A stretch of 63,705 nucleotides of DNA, filler included, from Platydemus manokwari (Eukaryota): the NCBI GenBank assembly GCA_037951405.1. It is 6 parts of 6 records of this genome, joined end to end, with 100 filler letters (N's around TTAATTAATTAA, not from the genome) between each part and the next. Parts side by side here need not be neighbours in the genome. Positions count along the whole stretch, not along the records: positions 30,093 to 41,152 come from JBBMOY010941084.1; 5 more parts are not named here. One strand, 5' to 3'. The position numbers were made by a program, and so were the translations under genes. A model generated the notes under the pieces. That model was given only the letters and a program-made list of their open reading frames with translations. It was not told where the DNA came from and searched no databases. The stretch's first letter is position 1, and each line of letters begins with the position of its first letter. This document shows, one piece after another, positions 30,093 to 41,152 of the stretch.

Positions 30093-30899
30093 AAACAAAG
30101 ATTTTGTTTATTCGCAACAAATTCTTTTGTTTAAAGCAAACCAAGGTCAAAGAAGAAAAATTTTCATAATTCTATTTTTAGCTACTACGTCATTGCTAAA
30201 AATAGTGTGGGTCAAAAACAGTAGGCTGTTGCTAAATTTAGGCATGACGTCTCGAGAGTTTCTAAATTTAGAAAAAAATGAGAACAAAAAATAGACACAC
30301 TAGAATGACGTATGCAACCTACAAAATCAGTATAAAAGAGCAAGCAAATTCATTTTGATTGCACTTTTTCATACTTGCACTGTATTACAAGCTATTAATT
30401 CAGCGAAACTTTTCCTCACGAAGCATTTTGACGAACCAATTTTCTCAAATTATTTATTCACGAAGCATTTGTATTAACCAGTTTTATCCCAAGAATTATT
30501 CGAACAATCTCATTGAGTCTTTTTTACAAGAAGCATACAAGAAAATTTCATTCCCAATTCAACTACTTATATTCAGAAACCATGATGAGTAAAATTTTAT
30601 ATTTTTATGTGCCTACAGCTGTTTCGATAGCTGTGTGGTTGTTTTAAATTCACCCAAGTTCAAACTTTATCTCCCACCTTTTTTTATCCACAGGGGTGTC
30701 TTGCTAATTAGTTAGGCACACCTGATTGTTCTACGGAAGGGATCTGATCGTCCACAATAGTGTCTTGTAGTTTACATTTAAATTTGTTATATTAATAAAA
30801 GTATTATATCGAAATTATTTACTTAATTATTGATTTTATCATTTTCAGGAACACTCATATTTTACAAGTATCTATATTTTAAATATTATTATTATTATA

Positions 30900-30984
30900 G
30901 TTTGAGAGTGATTTGAACACTTCCCGCGTATCTGATTGGAACAGATTCTGTTGGGAGCCAAATCGCAACCTACCTTCATACTAT
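30900..30984 (-). repeat. Possible tRNA-derived SINE head or tRNA pseudogene
   Basis: Minus strand has an A-box-like TAGTATGAAGGTAGG and a T-arm AGTG-TTCAAAT-CACT; no convincing cloverleaf. Confidence 0.3.
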
Positions 30985-31456
30985 ATTAAATCCGAACGTT
31001 ATATTGTATTCGTAATCTTATAACACCAAAATTTCGTTCCAATTTCATTTATTGCTATCTTGTCTTATAAAACCCCAACAATATTTATATTTAAATAAAA
31101 TTACACTCTTTAGAAATACGTAGGATTTAAAATGAATAATAATATTTAAAAAAATTCATAGTTTCTTTTACGAAAATTTCTAAAATAATGTACATAAACC
31201 TGTGTAATAATTTTTCTTCTAACACAAAATACTGAACAACATTGTAATATAAAATTCCATATTGGATAAATAATTTTCAAATCTTACAAAATATTCAAAA
31301 ATTATTTACATAAATAAGAGAAAGGCCAATATTCGATTAAATTAATTTAATTTATTTCTATAACCACTTTCAATTTTATAAAAGTAATTCAACAAATTCC
31401 AGAAAATCTGTTTTAAATTATTATCGAATTAATTTTTTAAGTTCATAATATTTAAA

Positions 31457-32183
31457 ATGGAAAATGAATATTATAATGTCAGGATATTAAGACAAGGATC
31501 AATTTCCGAATCCGAAGATGGTTCTTACAAGTTGAGATCTAATATATGCTTAGTCACTGGATCGAAAAATATTCTTGTAAACACTGGTGGAGCCTGGGAA
31601 GCAGATACATTAAATACATTGTTGATTAACTCAGGATTTTCAACTAATTTATTCGACTATGTTATTTGTACAAACAATAAAAGTGATAATATTGGGAATC
31701 TAAACTTATTTACAAATGCAACTCACATTGTTGGTCATGATATTCAGAAAGACCAATCGTTTTTGAATCATAAATTCTGCAACGAAATTCCATTTGAAAT
31801 AGATAGGAAAGTTAATTAATATATTATTGTTTTTTATTTGATTAATCATGTTAAGATTTCTGTTATACCTACTCCTGGAAGAAGTATGACAGATTTAAGT
31901 GTTATCATCGACAATGGTCCAGATGACGTCACTGCGATAGTGGGTGATATGATATTTTGTGAAGAAGAAATTAAGAACGACTATGAATTTAATGCTTGGC
32001 CTATCTGGAGTATAAATAAGCTCATAAGAAATAGAAGAAGTATAATGGAAAGAGTTCATCGAATAATACCCGGTCGTGGAAAAGAATTTATGGTTAAGAT
32101 TAAATTCAATGTAATATCATTCATTCTTGTTTTAGGTTCGCGAAGATCATTGCATATCGCCAACTATTCATTTTGATGATTGA
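31457..32183 (+). CDS. MBLAC1-like: MBLAC1-like metallo-beta-lactamase-fold protein (~212 aa) lacking metal-ligand histidines. Exons 31457-31810, 31856-32092, 32136-32183
   Basis: ILVNTGGAW, VICTNNKSDNIGNLNLF, PTPGRSMTDLSV, IVGDM and IIPGRG align motif by motif to MBLAC1 (ILVDTGGPW, THGHSDHIGNLxLF, TPGHT..DVSV, GDL, IVPGHG). Two short GT-AG introns (45 and 43 nt); AATAAA at 32210. Confidence 0.88.
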
Positions 32184-32313
32184 CATACTGATTGAAATTT
32201 TTGCTCTTTAATAAATATTTATGTAATTTTAAAGTTATAAAAAATAACAATATAGTTTTATTAAGTAGTAAATGTTAAATACATTTATTAAAACAACAAC
32301 GGACAACTAAATT

Positions 32314-34902
32314 TCATTCATTCCCATTAAGAATAAATTCATTGTTTTTGATTTCCGCTTTTGGTAGATCTTTTTCAGCATCCTTTTCAAATTGTCTATC
32401 AATCTTTGATTTTGCTCTCTCCAACACATCCCGTGACATCCTCAACAAACCATTATAAATATCTTGAAGTTGATTGACTTCCCGGACATTTTTACGTTCA
32501 ATGTATAATTTCGATTCCAGCTCCTTAAATTCACTGTTTAAACTATTTTCCATGTCTTTTGATGTGTGATAATGAGCTCGAATGTTTTCTATAAAGTTAG
32601 TAGTGATATAAATTAGAATTAAATAATCTTACCTAATTCTTCTTTACAGTCATTAAAATTTGATATAATGGTTTTAATTTCAGACTCGATATTTTTAATT
32701 CGTAATTTTGTATTTGCTTCATCATCCGTATAGATTGTTGATTCATTATTGACAACTAATTTCAATTTATTTCCTCGACTTAATTCGAGATCACTGATGC
32801 TGTCATCGAGCCTATCAACATTAAGTTCTCGATAATAGACACCCCCACGTCTACTTATAGCCTTAGCGATTAACTTCCTGGCTTGAGATCTCGATAAATC
32901 CAATCCAATAGAGTGAAGTATTTCCTCCAAATCATGCTCTTTAATATAATCTGCATGATCAACATCAAAAATACAAAATGACATCAATGTTTCTGCATCA
33001 AGTGGAGTCTTGTTAGGAACAGTTGCTTCCATTGTTGGTTTATTTTCAATTGTTTCTTCTCGCTTACGCTTTGCATCTGGTTCACCTTCAACTTTTTCCG
33101 TTTGTTCTGGGGGTACAGGTAATTTCACTAAGGTTTTATATATTTTAAAGGCAGAATCACGTTGAATCATTTCATTGAATTGCTCAGCAAAAACTGATAC
33201 TTCAAACGTGTTCTCTTTTTGATCGTCGCTTCTGTATTCGAGTAGATTGTGAAGTGACACTAGCTGACAATCAAATTTGCCATTTTTAACAGTTTTATTT
33301 GTATGGACCACAATCGACGGATTATCATTCATTTTGTACAATCGTTCGAAACGCTTTTTATCTTTGTCTGATAGATCTCGTATTTCATTTTTTTCCATTG
33401 ATTCACAAGCAACATCTTTCGATATTTTTTCCGTTTGTTTGCATTCTTCAACATTGACTGCTTCAGGATCAATTTTTGCATTACTTGCATCAATACCATC
33501 ATCCTACAAATCCATAAAAAATATTAAAATAAATATAATCACCTTTTCGTCTTCTTTTGCAATCGATTCTTCAACCTTAAAAAATTATAAATACACCTTA
33601 TTTCAAATATTTTTATTATTTTTCAAATTTAAATATTAATTATATTTATAAAATTACTTTCTCCTCGTTTTGTTCTTTTTTTTCATCAGTATCTACGATT
33701 TCAACACTAGGTTCAGGAATTGGTGGATTGATGATATTTTCCAGTGCACCAGTATATTTTTTCTTTGCTTCTTCCCATTTATCTGAATCAGGCATACAAT
33801 CCCAAATGGATGGTATGAACAATACCACAGTTTCAACGCGAAAATCAAGCTCAGCATCATTACGACTTTCATCATTTTCGCAGGATATATTTGTGCCTTG
33901 TCTATCAGCTGGACGATAATAATGAAATTCAATAAATCTGTACCTAAATAAAATTTAAAAGTTGTGCTCAAAAATTATGATTACCATTCTTTGCAAGGAG
34001 ATAAGTCGATACCCGTCAATTGCTTACATGTTCTTATAGCTGTATTTATTAGAACCTTTGGATCTTCGTCCGGGTTTGGACCATCTAAACTTGATGACCA
34101 AGGTCCACCAATCGCCATTGGTTCATTTTTACCTTTAGATCCAACAAGAAAATGCAGAGTTTTGTTTAAAGTTTTATATTGATTATTATCAGAAATATCA
34201 CTATCACCATCACAAACTGCCTTAATAATATCGCCCATTTCTGGAGAACTTATAAGCATTACTTTAGCAGAGTATATATAGTTTGCGTCAGATGGTTCGG
34301 CTTCTTCACTTACAAATGGCGTGAGTGGTTCAACGTCACGATGAAAAACTTGAAAAGTAGTTTTATTTCCAATTTTCATCGGGGAATAGATAGGAAAAAC
34401 TTCTTGCCAACGAAAATCGGAATGGAAAAAGTCAGAAGGAATATATAACTTAAGATATCTTGATCTTAACAAAGATATCGAGCCTTCTTTTAAATCATAA
34501 ACAACTTTAGGTGCTTTAACACTATACTTAGAAATAGGTTTTTTACTCACGACAGTAGGAGCAGTATTGTTATAATTGCGACGAACAGCGGATTGATTAT
34601 TTTCATGAGTATTCTTTTTTGGTGGAACACCTTCATAACGATTGTGAAAATCTCTTTTACCACGTCTGAATTAATAGCGTATTATCATCTCTAAATTTTT
34701 AAGTATTTTATACTTATTTTCCTCTCGGTAACCACCACGATTACCTCCATAGCCTCTACGCTCATTGTAGACATTGCCATAATTCATTTGATTCCCATAT
34801 CCTTGTGAATACATATAATTACCTAAACAAGTGTTAAAAGGCTTCGAGAATGTTAATGTAAATACTATTATTCAATTGGTTTCTCCATGACCTATTCGCC
34901 AT
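32314..34902 (-). CDS. CCAR1: CCAR1 (cell cycle and apoptosis regulator 1), ~763 aa. Exons 34902-34866, 34822-34714, 34665-33985, 33943-33658, 33575-33543, 33503-32633, 32588-32314
   Basis: LYIPSDFF; DBC1 domain FLVGSKGKNEPMAIGGPWSSSLDGPNP...TAIRTCKQLTGIDLSPCKEW|YRFIEFHYYRP; KENTFEVSVFAEQFNEMIQRD; EF-hand-like FDVDHADYIKEHDLEEILHSIG; C-terminal coiled coil. All phases are consistent. Confidence 0.93.
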
Positions 34903-35151
34903 TGTTAATTTAAAAAATTATAGAAATAATAATAGATATAATTTAGTTAAACAAAGAAATTTAAATAGAGATGTACAATACGATTATTCAAAAACATATA
35001 TTTTTTTACAATTTAGATTACCGAAATAGATCCAAATAAATTTTATGAAATACAATTTATTATGTTCAATTAAATTCACCAATTTGTTTAGAAATGACGA
35101 TAATTAAATCATTTTAAATTTAATTTAAATTTGATTTTTTAATTAAAGTCG

Positions 35152-35159
35152 TGACGTCA
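35152..35159. promoter_or_regulatory. Full CRE palindrome TGACGTCA in the CCAR1/HSBP1 divergent intergenic region
   Basis: Exact match about 250 bp upstream of the CCAR1 ATG, in otherwise very AT-rich DNA. Confidence 0.45.
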
Positions 35160-35323
35160 TTACATTTTTAAAATGTTCATTTAAAATTTTGTATTTCTGA
35201 TAACTTTTCTTAAATAATGACTAAATGAATTGACTTAATTGTTATTTGTATTCCAACATTCATGAACGACTTTGTAAACATTATAAAGTTAGAAACCCAT
35301 GCTGGCTCATTAAATTCATATTC

Positions 35324-35338
35324 TGAAAATTCGGGAAT
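35324..35338. promoter_or_regulatory. Three-unit heat-shock element tGAAaaTTCggGAAt
   Basis: Exact nGAAnnTTCnnGAAn match about 470 bp upstream of the HSBP1 ATG. Confidence 0.4.
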
Positions 35339-35804
35339 TATTCTGTGAGAATGGTGTAAACCCAGGTGATTGTGCCAATTAAGAAATTAAGCGGAATGAG
35401 AAATATTGCAATGATAACTTTGGTTTATATTTATTATATCTAGTTAAATTTTGGATGGCCATTATACCTTTATATATTTTTTAATTTGACAACGGTTCAT
35501 ACAAAATTTATCAGATAAGAAAAATGTCCAGGATTAATTAAACTCATATTTATAAATTATTTTAACATACGATAAATGTATTTTAATTAATTATTTTTTT
35601 ATTAAATTTACAGAGTATTCAAAGAATTATAATTGTAACTGTATAGCATGAAAAATTTAAGTTATTCAGCAAATTGATCATTTCGTGACATTAAACCCTA
35701 AACAAACATTTTATTTTACTTATCATTTAAAATAATGGTTAAATAAAGATTTCATAACTTAAATCGAATTGTTTTAGTAATTTACGTATTTTACGAAATT
35801 TAAA

Positions 35805-36126
35805 ATGGAAAGAAATGTTGATGCTAACAAAGTAAATAATATACCAGATTTGACATCTCAAGTTTCATTTTATTGATTATTACACTCGTTAATTTATTTA
35901 TACTTTAGATACAAACTATGTTAGATCAGATGCAAAATAGGTTTCAAACAATGGGCGATGAAATTACAGCTAAGCATATCCTTTTATTTTTAAAATTCTA
36001 TAAATTGAAAAATTGATTTTCATACTATTTATCCTTAACCACATTATTTTACTTGATTCAATGTCAGATAGAATAGACGACATGGAAAAGAATATTGCCG
36101 ACATAATGAAAACTACAGAAAATTAA
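35805..36126 (+). CDS. HSBP1: Heat shock factor binding protein 1 (65 aa). Exons 35805-35861, 35909-35975, 36053-36126; second intron is U12-type AT-AC
   Basis: Spliced product MERNVDANKVNNIPDLTSQ|IQTMLDQMQNRFQTMGDEITAK|LDSMSDRIDDMEKNIADIMKTTEN matches HSBP1 ([46 protein letters not shown]). Not in the ORF track. Confidence 0.93.
35976..36052 (+). other. U12-type (minor spliceosome) AT-AC intron, 77 nt
   Basis: 5' ATATCCTTT, branch site TCCTTAAC at 36032-36039, terminal AC at 36051-36052; removal restores the HSBP1 frame. Confidence 0.93.
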
Positions 36127-36849
36127 ACGTTGTCAATTATTTACAAATCGTTTTATCTTTGCAAATTTCAATAAAATTTTTATAAAATATATTTCAGCAT
36201 TAAAATTATTCTCAAGAAAATCTAATTATTAATTACTTTGTAATTTTGATCAAAGTTAAATTGCATGTTTTGACTTCAGGTATGTGTAACGATTCGAAAT
36301 ATTTTGTGAAGAATGATAAGATTTTTATAATTTTAATAAATTCAATGTTTGGTTGTATTTATTTGAACTTATAAAGCTGCACGGATTATTTTATTTTTAT
36401 ATTAATGATTATTTAAAAACAGTAATGTTATAAAAAATTTTGTAATGATTTTCTTTTGGAGATGATAGTAATTGGTAATATATTTTTTTCTCATCAAATA
36501 CTGTGTTAAAACAGTTGGAATTTGAAATATAATTTCTGTTAATAGAAACAATACAAAGTTTCAGTAAATTTAGTACAAATCAGAACAAGGTATTAAAATT
36601 GCTCCTCTACTAAATAATTTTAAATTTCAAACTCAATTTCTTCTATATACTTCTAGTAAACTATAGCTTGATATATTGGATTTTAAAATTAATTATTTCG
36701 TCTATGAAATTCAAGAAAATATAACATTTTAAAAATTACAGTCAAACATGTTTAACATGATAGTCAATATACCTATTTTTACTTAGGTGCACGTTTAAAA
36801 AGTTATATTTGCGTCGATTAAAAAATTTAACATATAATTTAAAGCAACC

Positions 36850-37520
36850 AATAGAATTTGTTATTTTCAATTACCTCGATTCTTTTTTCTCATTGAAAAT
36901 CATCAACAAATTTTACTGGTATCATTTGGAAAATTAATTTAAAAATCAATTTTTTTTACACATGGATTGGCTTCGTATCCTGTAACAATTGCATCTCATA
37001 TTTTAGTTCCACTTTTTCATAACCTTTTACGTACTTCTACTAAACCAAGTAAAAGTTCTTCATCAATTTTTGAATTTATATCAAAGTACAAAAATCATCT
37101 AATTATTCGACATGAGTTTTCATGAGACTTGGTAAAACAATTATAGATAGTCGTTGACTTGACACTATGCCAACCATGACTTGAAACCCATCAACATTTT
37201 TGCACAACTCTTAAAGTCTAATGTTATTACTTAAATCAAAAATGATTGATGAACTTAAACAATGACAATAATTTCGAAAGATATTTATAATATATCGGTC
37301 AAGAGATAAATTAAGAGATTGTATTTGGTGCTCAATAATAACTCCTTGTTGCTCATTTCTAATTTTTTTTGGTGAATTGACAGAATAATAAGATTAAGTC
37401 CCTCTGTTTTCATTTTACTGTATAATTTTTAACTAATTTAGAAACATTCTTAGAGTCATCTAAGACTTTGTATTCCGAGTGCAACAAAACAATGCCAACT
37501 TTTCCAAGTCAAAATTTTTA
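36850..37520 (-). mobile_element. Degraded hAT-like transposase fragment
   Basis: Minus-strand NVDGFQVMVGIVSS (cf. SDGASVMxG..SG) followed by a PSLMKTH-like stretch (cf. P.L...HC); no ORF. Confidence 0.35.
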
Positions 37521-40500
37521 AAACAATGAAATTTCTTTGACTTGCCTATTAGCTAAAGATTTAATTTTTCTAATAATATTTTTATTAAATTAATGAATGT
37601 ATTTGCTGGATTTTGTTATTAAATTTAAATTTTAAACTGATCATTAGGGAATTCAATCTTTTGTAGAATGAGAGAACAATTGGCATTATTTTAATTGAAA
37701 ATCTAAAGGTGATTTTAAATGACGATATGGTCTATTAACACTGATTACTGATCAAACAAACTCAATATTATTTCTAAATAAGTAAATATATTAATTTCAA
37801 AAAGCATTATAATGTTGATGTTTAAAAATCAAAATCTTGAAGACTGATCATAATAAATTCTTTATTTATAACACAATTTTGAACACAAAACAGCAAAAAA
37901 TTATTGGTAAAATACGCAACTCGATACTTAGGTGAGTCGCCGCTAAATCCGTAAGTCGGATGGAGACCAGTTATGTAATGATTAAACAACAATTAAACAA
38001 AAGATGGTTATCAAAATGACTAATTTTAGCTTTAAAATACCGCAATGATAAAATGGTTTCAATTAAATTTGAAAAAAAATGAATGCAACCAAATCTAACT
38101 ACTTAGTGTAAATGTTCTCGCTTAGAAATCGTGATTAAAAAAAATTTCATTTCCAACGATTCGGCTTGTGCATAGGTTCCTTAGTGGTTTTTTTGTGGTT
38201 GTTTGATTTCAATTCATGTCTTTATTTAAGGTTTAATCTCAATCCATGAGAATTCACCATGTTTTATTCTTATTTTTACGAGAATTCGTCAGTGTTTTAT
38301 TTGCAAATTGTCAGCTTTATATATGACTTATTCTGTATTTTCTTATATTATTTTTTATAGATATTTTATTGTTACTAATTTTATAACTTTATTCTGTACT
38401 TAACCTTACGTTATTGCTTCATCTTATAATAATTATTACTACATTATTGATTTTATTATTATTAATATTAATATTATAATTAATGCTGTATTATTATTAT
38501 CCTTATTGTAAATTTTTTCTTACTACAATAATTTTTTCACAACTATATTAACTTTATGATTAAATCAGCAGAATTAATTGTCCGATTAATAAAAACCAAA
38601 TTAACCTACACAATGAAAACCAAAATTGTGTTGGGTTTTGTTGATTACGTCTGTTAATAAACGCAACAGCGTGAGTTCGCAATAATTAAGTTATGCATGT
38701 AGTTTTAAGTTAATAAATGAAACACAAATGAAAATTTACTTAAATTTTTTTTTGAATATTAAATTGCAAATTAATAATGCAGGTTGACTCAAACGTAAGT
38801 TTGCAACAAGTTTAGTTATCTTGATGAGATCGAAAGAACTTGACTATAACTTTAATGATTTTGATCTATGTTTTTAGAAATGAGCTAAATATATTATATA
38901 AAATTAAATTTATGTTTTTAGTCTATTGGTTAATTTTAAGTATTCTTATTATCATTAGCTTGAATTTATTACTGGTCCTAAAGGGCTTCAACAGCTAGCA
39001 TTGAAAACCACGTTATTTGCAAATATACTGACCCTCTCTAAAGGCTGTGAAAGCTAACTTCGATATATTGTGTGGATGAATGTTAATTATCTAAGTTTAA
39101 CGATGAAAAGACCAGCTTGTGTTTTGATAAAAGTTCTAAAATTATAATATCAATTAACAAATATTTCTTCACTGATCTCTGTGACTATAATTAATTGAAA
39201 ACTATAAAGATAGTTTTTCAGAAATTTATATTTATGAAATAAAATGCTAAAAAGAGAGGAAAATATAACAATAAAAATTTATGCAATGCTCAGTACGTCA
39301 CGAAAGCAAGTTGCTGAAAATCCGAAATCGGTCTGAGAAGAGGTCAGTTATATAGGAGATGTTCATTACGACGAATGCAATTATGAATTATATTTAATTA
39401 ATGATTAAATGAACATGGAATTAAGACCTTATAAAATAGAAATAAACTTCACTTCGCTTAATTTGAAAAATCTTTTGAACTCGAAATATATCCACTCGAA
39501 TGCTCAAACAATATATGATCGCTGAATGTCGAATATTCCGTTAATATGAATCAATAAAGCTGCCCTGTTTGATTCGAAAAATCTGATTATCGCAACTTTG
39601 ACTTAGGTTTTTGTGTATGTCTGGATCAACTATTACTTATGTATTTATGATGATCCAAACTTCCAACTACCTGCTCTTTCTGATAATTTACTGATTAATT
39701 ACGTGGATTTTCTTAACATGTTATCTCATTTATTGCTATTTTTCGATGTGTTTTTGTGTATTTTTTAATATGTTTATTTAACTTATCTTATGACCTTTTC
39801 CTGTACTATTATTTGTTTTTATATTATTATTAATTATAACTATTTGATCTTATTTAATCAACATATTGTTAGACAATAATATGTTGCACAATGAATTGAC
39901 AATTTATATTCAACACATTATCAATCATCGTTAAAAGATAACCAATTGTTGTCAGTAATTCAAGTTTCTTAATAATTCCTGGGTTATTGGCTTAATTATC
40001 CGCTCATGGCTTCTTCCACATCTATAGTCAGACTGTTGTATTGTTATGCATATTATTGCATTACATTATATTTCGATTGGAACATATTTGCAAAAATGAT
40101 GGTAGGAGATTCCAACATTTCTCTCTCTTTACGCACACACACACACACATATATATAATGAAAATGATTTACCAAAATTTAATAAGGTGGTTAGCCTATT
40201 TTAAAACATAATCACTGTCTATTCGATAGTTATTAAAGTGAGTTCGCTAAGATCTGTTTGAATTGATGATTAAATTCTACGTATGGACTGGGTATTTGGA
40301 TATATCTCTTTGGCTATGGGCATGGGTGATAGTCGAGTCTGAGGTTGCTCTGCTGCTCTTCCAACACATGATAAATTTAAATGTTATATAAAGTGATTTA
40401 ATAAAATTTAAAAGTTGAAATGATAACAGATAATTAAATAAAACAATTAAATTGTTATATCGGTAATTTAAAATATCTGCCACTTAATTTTATTTTTATA

Positions 40501-40717
40501 TGTATATGTGTAGACTTATTGATAAATATTTCTCTCTCAATTATTATTATTTATTTTTTCAATGAAATTCTCAATTAATATTTCAAATATATTCTCAATA
40601 TATAAAATTCAATTTTATTTAACTTATTGATTGAGAATCATTTTCCTTAATTTAATAATTAATAAATTAAATTTAAGTATAACAAAATTAAACAATTGAT
40701 AGTAATTTTTCAATTCA

Positions 40718-40931
40718 ATGGGTAAACCTATTTTTGACGAATTAACGAATATCAAGATTGGATTATCAATTTCCATGCTGTTAATTGTTTTGATATTGGT
40801 TCTTGGTCCATTTTATTTGATAAGAAATATTTTTAAAAGGAAATATGAAAATAATTATGAAAAAACCGTTACAATGGAAAGAGTTATGTCTGTTTTGAGT
40901 TGCTTTGCAGCTGGTGTTATTCTTACCACTG
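40718..40931 (+). CDS. First exon of a ZIP (SLC39A1-3-like) metal transporter; remainder lost at the contig end
   Basis: KIGLSISMLLIVLILVLGP (TM1) and SVLSCFAAGVILTT (cf. LSCFxGGVFLAT), followed by a G|GTAAGT donor at 40932. Confidence 0.75.
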
Positions 40932-41152
40932 GTAAGTTTTTTTTTATGATTTCATTGATATTAATATTAATTTTATGTTTTAAATTTCGGTTTATTAGAA
41001 ACACTGAATTTCGTATTTATTTTTTAGTTTGATTGTTTCTAAAATTTTTATAATTTTATTTCAAATTAATCAAATTTATAAAAGTATGAAATAATAAAAT
41101 CTGTTACAAAATAAATCTATCGAGAGAAATATCATGATAGAGAATAGTTGTG

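Follow-up and report, generated by a model that had tools for sequence, protein, structure and literature searches.

A candidate MBLAC1 pseudoenzyme with replaced metal ligands in Platydemus manokwari

The window analysed here, a stretch of 63,705 nucleotides joined from six parts of the Platydemus manokwari genome assembly (GCA_037951405.1), carries a three-exon gene of the MBLAC1 branch of MBL-fold proteins in which every histidine that would be expected to bind a metal ion has been replaced. The explanation that best accommodates the sequence comparisons is that this is a real, spliced gene whose di-metal centre has been lost and whose non-catalytic product is kept by purifying selection, and we consider it probable that the protein is a pseudoenzyme in this sense. 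A report on human MBLAC1 describes it as a histone pre-mRNA 3' endonuclease (PMC6303110), and MBLAC1 and its counterpart SWIP-10 have been connected with histone mRNA 3' processing, copper homeostasis, the glial protection of dopamine neurons and the risk of Alzheimer disease, their biochemical role being still debated (PMC6303110, PMC11441482).

The gene lies on the plus strand of the piece at 30093-41152 (JBBMOY010941084.1), which has 27% GC and no N, and its three exons join into a 639-nt coding sequence that begins with an ATG at 31457 and specifies a product of 212 amino acids (below, the window protein). Exon 1 (31457..31810), with 118 codons from the ATG, bears motif I as VNTGG (N42 at 31580) and a degenerate motif II that reads T-N-N-K-S-D-N (31670-31690). 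Exon 2 (31856..32092; 79 codons) bears TPGR as motif III (R127 at 31880), VGDM as motif IV with its Asp kept (D149 at 31946), and PGRG as motif V (R192 at 32075), and exon 3 (32136..32183) supplies the last 15 codons and a TGA stop. Both introns are of the GT..AG type and in phase 0, intron 1 (31811..31855, GTTAAT...TTAAG) being 45 nt and intron 2 (32093..32135, GTTAAG...TTTTAG) 43 nt long; because intron 1 contains an in-frame TAA, the full protein can be made only by splicing. The junction of exons 1 and 2, EIDRK/ISVIPTPGR, is collinear with the closest relative, P0001, and with every other homologue, and the C-terminal tail beyond the junction of exons 2 and 3 resembles that of P0001. A hexamer that, by sequence only, resembles a polyadenylation signal (AATAAA, 32210..32215, plus strand) follows 27 nt 3' of the stop. 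The uninterrupted reading frame, clean introns and polyA signal described in an earlier note on this DNA are thus all confirmed.

The remainder of the piece offers several observations in their own right. A multi-exon CCAR1/DBC1-like gene on the minus strand (32314-34850) faces the MBLAC1-like gene tail to tail, their stops some 130 nt apart, and encodes a LAIKA domain (E = 2.8e-29), a pair of EF-hands and a DBC1 domain (E = 3.8e-24). A CCAR/DBC1 exon with 68% identity to one in this gene is found on Logan contig L001 (SRR33002330), where the GC content is 48% as against 27% here; no MBLAC1-like sequence was found beside the exon on that contig, which stops within the intergenic region. Further along, a small HSBP1-like gene (~35806-36130, plus strand) was recognised by eye from the residues ...QTMGDEIT...RIDDMEKNIADIM..., and its second intron apparently starts with GC (gctaag) rather than GT. 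A 104-aa open reading frame near the end of the piece (40718-41032, plus strand) begins with a hydrophobic segment like that of a membrane protein and probably represents the first exon of a gene truncated by the edge of the piece. Rfam and tRNA scans of the 11-kb piece returned no matches. The contig set of the only public sequencing run that holds DNA of the MBLAC1-like locus amounts to 543 Mb in 4.3 million contigs, a size that points to a large source genome or sample and, the short introns notwithstanding, tells against a compact one of ~50 Mb.

The assignment to the MBLAC1 branch rests on sequence and structural comparisons that agree with one another. Exon 1 aligns with human MBLAC1 (PDB 4V0H; E = 7.8e-7), with T-N-N-K-S-D-N placed opposite T-H-G-H-S-D-H, and when 1.84 billion protein representatives were searched exhaustively with this exon by HMMER, 190 matches were obtained, those with names being overwhelmingly annotated as MBLAC1 from snails, flukes, insects, amphioxus and sea urchin. 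Only one of the 190 is a close relative, namely P0001 (208 aa; UniParc UPI00060102BF), which is 79% identical to the window protein over 207 aligned residues (81% between exon 1 and P0001 residues 3-116) and collinear at both exon junctions; the matches that come next are 30-46% identical. No further close ortholog is on record, a word search with P0001 returning only itself and one intact protein of 37% identity, and no DNA relative of P0001 was found by a scan of metagenome contigs. P0001 was used as a proxy for the spliced window protein in the Pfam, PDB and AlphaFold comparisons. Its score for the Lactamase_B family (PF00753), 44.6 bits, exceeds the cutoff of 22.7, whereas the exons of the window gene, which were scanned one by one and not as the spliced 212-aa protein, gave no PF00753 match. 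Against the PDB, P0001 aligns over residues 36-198 with 4V0H (E = 4.2e-13), TPGR standing opposite TPGH and PGRG opposite PGHG, and the next PDB match is at 1.6e-5. The AlphaFold model of P0001, which was built from an alignment in which active homologues dominate, has a pLDDT of 93.9 and a pTM of 0.91, and its top Foldseek matches are the chains of 4V0H (TM 0.85/0.81, rmsd 2.2 Å), so the preserved fold proposed earlier is borne out for this proxy. As judged from these comparisons, the window protein is an MBLAC1 homologue by descent and by fold, and in a functional sense it would stand outside the catalytic family.

The metal ligands of MBLAC1 are His116, His118, Asp120 and His121 of motif II together with His196, Asp221 and His263 (PMC6303110). 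When 99 MBLAC1-like proteins were aligned with MAFFT, the eight columns formed by the motif I Asp and these seven ligands were found to read D-H-H-D-H-H-D-H in 61 of the 99, N-N-K-D-N-R-D-R in the window protein and N-N-K-D-H-R-D-R in P0001. The replacement codons in the window are AAC for N42 (31580), AAC for N73 (31673), AAA for K75 (31679), AAT for N78 (31688), AGA for R127 (31880) and CGT for R192 (32075), and the two Asp ligands are retained as D77 (31685) and D149 (31946); every codon position given in the earlier note for the five histidines, and the change of VDTG to VNTG, proved exact. Compared with a His codon (CAY), AGA differs at three positions and AAA at two, and such multi-position differences indicate that these two changes are old. 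Each of the five His ligands has changed, as have 12 of the other 40 positions with a family conservation of 80% or more (Fisher p = 0.005), which upholds the contention that the loss is concentrated on the histidines; with the two kept Asp ligands included, p is 0.06. The accompanying statement that the scaffold and the two Asp residues are kept stands for D77 and D149 and fails in part for the scaffold, since the window protein, while retaining the residues that define the fold, keeps 28 of the 45 positions with 80% conservation or more and differs at the other 17, as where GDLFE has become GDMIF. P0001 shares the replacement of the motif I Asp and of all but one of the five His ligands, which places most of the loss before the split of the two lineages. 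The loss of the fifth His, at the motif II position now occupied by N78, is by this comparison a later event in the window lineage only, as expected once the site had stopped binding metal.

Several readings compete with that of a selected, metal-free protein. An assembly or gene-model artefact that hides a sequence with His codons is scarcely credible: no point in its favour was found, a Logan contig of 4184 bases, independently built from the one run that holds the locus, has 0 differences from the assembly across 31309-32400 and hence none of the His codons that the earlier note had thought reads might reveal, P0001, which comes from a separate source, agrees with the window protein at seven of the eight ligand columns, and several of the codon differences are multi-nucleotide ones. 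The agreement of the contig, for which the sample behind the assembly is a possible source, excludes an assembly slip and carries no independent biological support. A young pseudogene, decaying or unexpressed, whose open frame has survived by chance, is improbable, although it gains something from the single close relative known, from the long stem branch with its many changed conserved positions, and from the absence of RNA runs with the locus in a search of public sequencing runs, which returned a single match of unrecorded kind stored as contigs. Set against this are the intact frame, introns and stop, and the presence of the dead signature in a relative that has diverged by 21%. When neutral, AT-biased substitution was simulated on the window coding sequence up to 21% amino-acid divergence, with indels and splice sites uncounted, the frame was left intact in ~2.4% of simulations (P about 0.02). 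Of the 44 aligned positions at which the window protein departs from P0001, 39 could be scored for family conservation, and these differences fall mostly where the family varies, with 5 among the 65 positions of the most conserved third, 10 among the 64 of the middle third and 24 among the 65 of the most variable third (Mann-Whitney p = 2.7e-6). The replacements are also conservative, the 44 having a mean BLOSUM62 score of +0.23 as against -0.45 for random single-nucleotide nonsynonymous changes (p = 0.006). Neutral decay since the split is therefore unlikely on these three protein-level tests, which draw on one pairwise comparison with P0001, itself a predicted gene model, and the tests, together with the shared replacements in P0001, favour the selected metal-free protein suggested earlier over a young pseudogene. 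The clade of the window protein and P0001 has a long stem of ~1.5 changes per site, which, with the 17 of 45 conserved positions changed, implies that constraint was for a time relaxed or altered, and the stem would represent a burst of change at the time when the metal site was lost or thereafter.

If the gene is thus a functional one, what remains to be weighed is the task of its product. In the pseudoenzyme that we prefer, the basic residues at former ligand positions (K75, R127 and R192), from which side chains converge on the metal ions, would pair with the retained carboxylates of D77 and D149, and this cluster of salt bridges would take the place of the metals and stabilise the zinc-free alpha-beta-beta-alpha sandwich; the former substrate groove could then bind a partner protein or a nucleic acid, with no hydrolysis. 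The counted charge of such a site, K + R + R less D + D, is +1, and this is no higher than the count for two Zn(II) with two Asp and a bridging hydroxide. Given this equality, the cationic pocket of the earlier proposal, by which RNA or phosphate could be bound, is not adopted here as established, and the Lys and Arg residues may simply fill and neutralise an empty metal site. That the pocket has instead been remodelled for a chemistry that needs no metal or uses other ligands, through its Lys, Arg and Asp residues, leaving the protein an enzyme still, strikes us as quite improbable. D77 and D149 are kept in both species, the replacements are polar or charged and not random, and the change of H118 to Arg or Lys in independent lineages hints at a favoured alternative state, but the fourth ligand of motif II is His in P0001 and Asn in the window protein, as would suit a site that has ceased to matter, and the nearby conserved GDLFE motif is altered. 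No MBL-fold hydrolase is known to work without its metal centre, and this too counts against continued catalysis. The protein might also form a heterodimer with a His-intact MBLAC1 paralogue and regulate or scaffold it, as CPSF100 does with CPSF73 and INTS9 with INTS11, an arrangement that we regard as unlikely, if less so than continued catalysis. It would fit with the dimeric state of human MBLAC1, whose active site adjoins the interface (PMC6303110), with the established existence of dead MBL-fold partners of active nucleases (PMC7980224, PMC10688271), and with the proximity in the tree of degenerate and intact MBLAC1-like proteins, such as P0091 of Halyomorpha with P0052, and P0026 and P0062 with intact snail MBLAC1. 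On the other side, there is no second MBLAC1 copy in the 11-kb piece, no intact protein was assignable to the same species, and the dimerisation of human MBLAC1 is reduced by ligand substitution or metal removal (PMC6303110), so that a metal-free subunit may dimerise poorly. These features of the human dimer, an interface beside the active site and a weakening without metal, tell neither for nor against a heterodimer.

The pseudoenzyme reading is placed in context by other MBLAC1 homologues, since ligand loss also occurs in flukes and a monogenean, in mollusc-affiliated sequences, in a stink bug and in Steinernema. A clade typified by the motif TDGRAE[HF] (support 100/98) unites proteins of Paragonimus spp. 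(P0034, P0171, P0173 and P0174) and Protopolystoma xenopodis (P0010) with P0006; its motif II reads T-D-G-R-A-E-(H/F) and its other ligands are replaced. The Opisthorchis and Clonorchis proteins have an intact motif II, THEHVDH, and the comparison suggests that an old and conserved dead MBLAC1 may exist in parasitic flatworms beside these intact proteins. Long-lived dead MBLAC1-like proteins would accordingly have a precedent in the Paragonimus and Protopolystoma sequences. Like the window protein, the members of this clade are ligand-less, with the motif I Asp changed to Asn, H116 to Asp or Asn and H118 to Arg or Lys; unlike it, they have insertions of their own and bear Gln, Asn and Tyr at the other ligand positions where the window protein has Arg, Asp and Arg. 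The window clade, whose weak placement puts it in an unresolved cluster that includes flatworm sequences, is sister to the TDGRAE clade in the best tree and remains so when the ligand columns are left out, a placement of weak support (74/81) on long branches, and the window protein is 32-35% identical to the TDGRAE clade as against 38-40% to intact proteins. AU tests of joining the window clade with opisthorchiid, all flatworm or nematode sequences rejected none of the three (p = 0.18, 0.28 and 0.14, respectively). The loss may be common to the window and TDGRAE clades or may have arisen independently in each.

Elsewhere in the family, the sequences with SDGRVEN and PYGHVET are sister to intact snail MBLAC1, the Halyomorpha halys protein (P0091/P0175), with TNGDPGN as its motif II, is sister to the intact protein P0052, and P0117 of Steinernema glaseri has a heavily degenerate ligand set. 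Arg or Lys at the position of His118 is found in the window lineage, in the fluke-monogenean clade and in most of the mollusc-affiliated sequences. P0026, P0147, P0100, P0062, P0127 and P0002 likewise belong among these independent, ligand-degenerate MBLAC1 homologues, the last of them being a Biomphalaria model in which a duplicated first half with the motif II TSGKMAQ precedes an intact copy; the duplicated half could be an alternative or a tandem-duplicated exon. In databases, the ligand-less sequences bear the plain label MBLAC1. The best match of the window protein is thus not to an inactive family already described, for ligand-less MBLAC1-like lineages are present in databases and a literature search found no published description of a dead MBLAC1, or of MBLAC1 together with the word pseudoenzyme.

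Taken by itself, the gene in the window is a modest result that adds one more pseudoenzyme candidate, and the recurrent pattern among invertebrates raises its interest somewhat. A possible, if doubtful, extension is that proteins of the MBLAC1 family also do a job that needs no metal, such as the binding of nucleic acids or partner proteins, and that selection would have preserved this job after repeated loss of the di-metal site in invertebrates, with Lys or Arg at H118 and other basic residues standing in for the metal ions. Should this be true, natural metal-free variants would separate the catalytic from the non-catalytic roles of MBLAC1/SWIP-10, and the conserved versions without a metal site would serve as ready-made separation-of-function alleles; were they expressed and found to bind the same partners or RNAs, a non-catalytic function of the family would follow. 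For annotation, the consequence is that recurrent ligand loss in independent invertebrate lineages is hidden under the label MBLAC1.

Among characterized proteins, human MBLAC1 is the nearest to the window protein, its structure (4V0H) being both the best PDB match in sequence and the best structural match of the P0001 model. The two are alike in length, in domain limits and in the spacing of their motifs (VxTGG, T-x-x-x-x-D-x-IGNLNLF, TPGx, GD and PGxG), but the window protein has all five His ligands (H116, H118, H121, H196 and H263 in BBL terms) and the motif I Asp replaced, is only ~24% identical overall and has a six-residue insertion before a conserved Trp. An MBLAC1-type domain is likewise common to the window protein and to SWIP-10 of C. 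elegans and its nematode relatives (PMC11441482), although the nematode SWIP-10-type proteins are ~490-515 aa long, having a much extended N-terminal region and the HxHxDH motif intact, whereas the window protein is ligand-less and has 212 residues. In the trees, a long distance separates the nematode proteins from the window protein, even if the AU test did not reject their joining; the 515-aa P0125 of Auanema, judged by its length and by a domain placed towards the C terminus, looks like a SWIP-10 relative.

Two groups of dead enzymes offer a wider frame for a metal-free member of the MBLAC1 branch. The carbonic-anhydrase-related proteins CARP VIII, X and XI have had their His zinc ligands replaced, often by Arg or Gln, and yet keep their fold, remain strongly conserved and act by binding partners; their fold is unrelated to that of the window protein, and the likeness is one of analogy only. 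CPSF100 and INTS9 stand closer, in that they have the MBL fold, have degenerate metal ligands and are kept as non-catalytic proteins, although they belong to the beta-CASP subfamily, exceed 600 aa and are obligate heterodimer subunits with CPSF73 and INTS11, whereas any partner of the window protein would be hypothetical. Dead MBL-fold proteins are, with these examples, already established as a kind, and the window protein is a variant of that kind.
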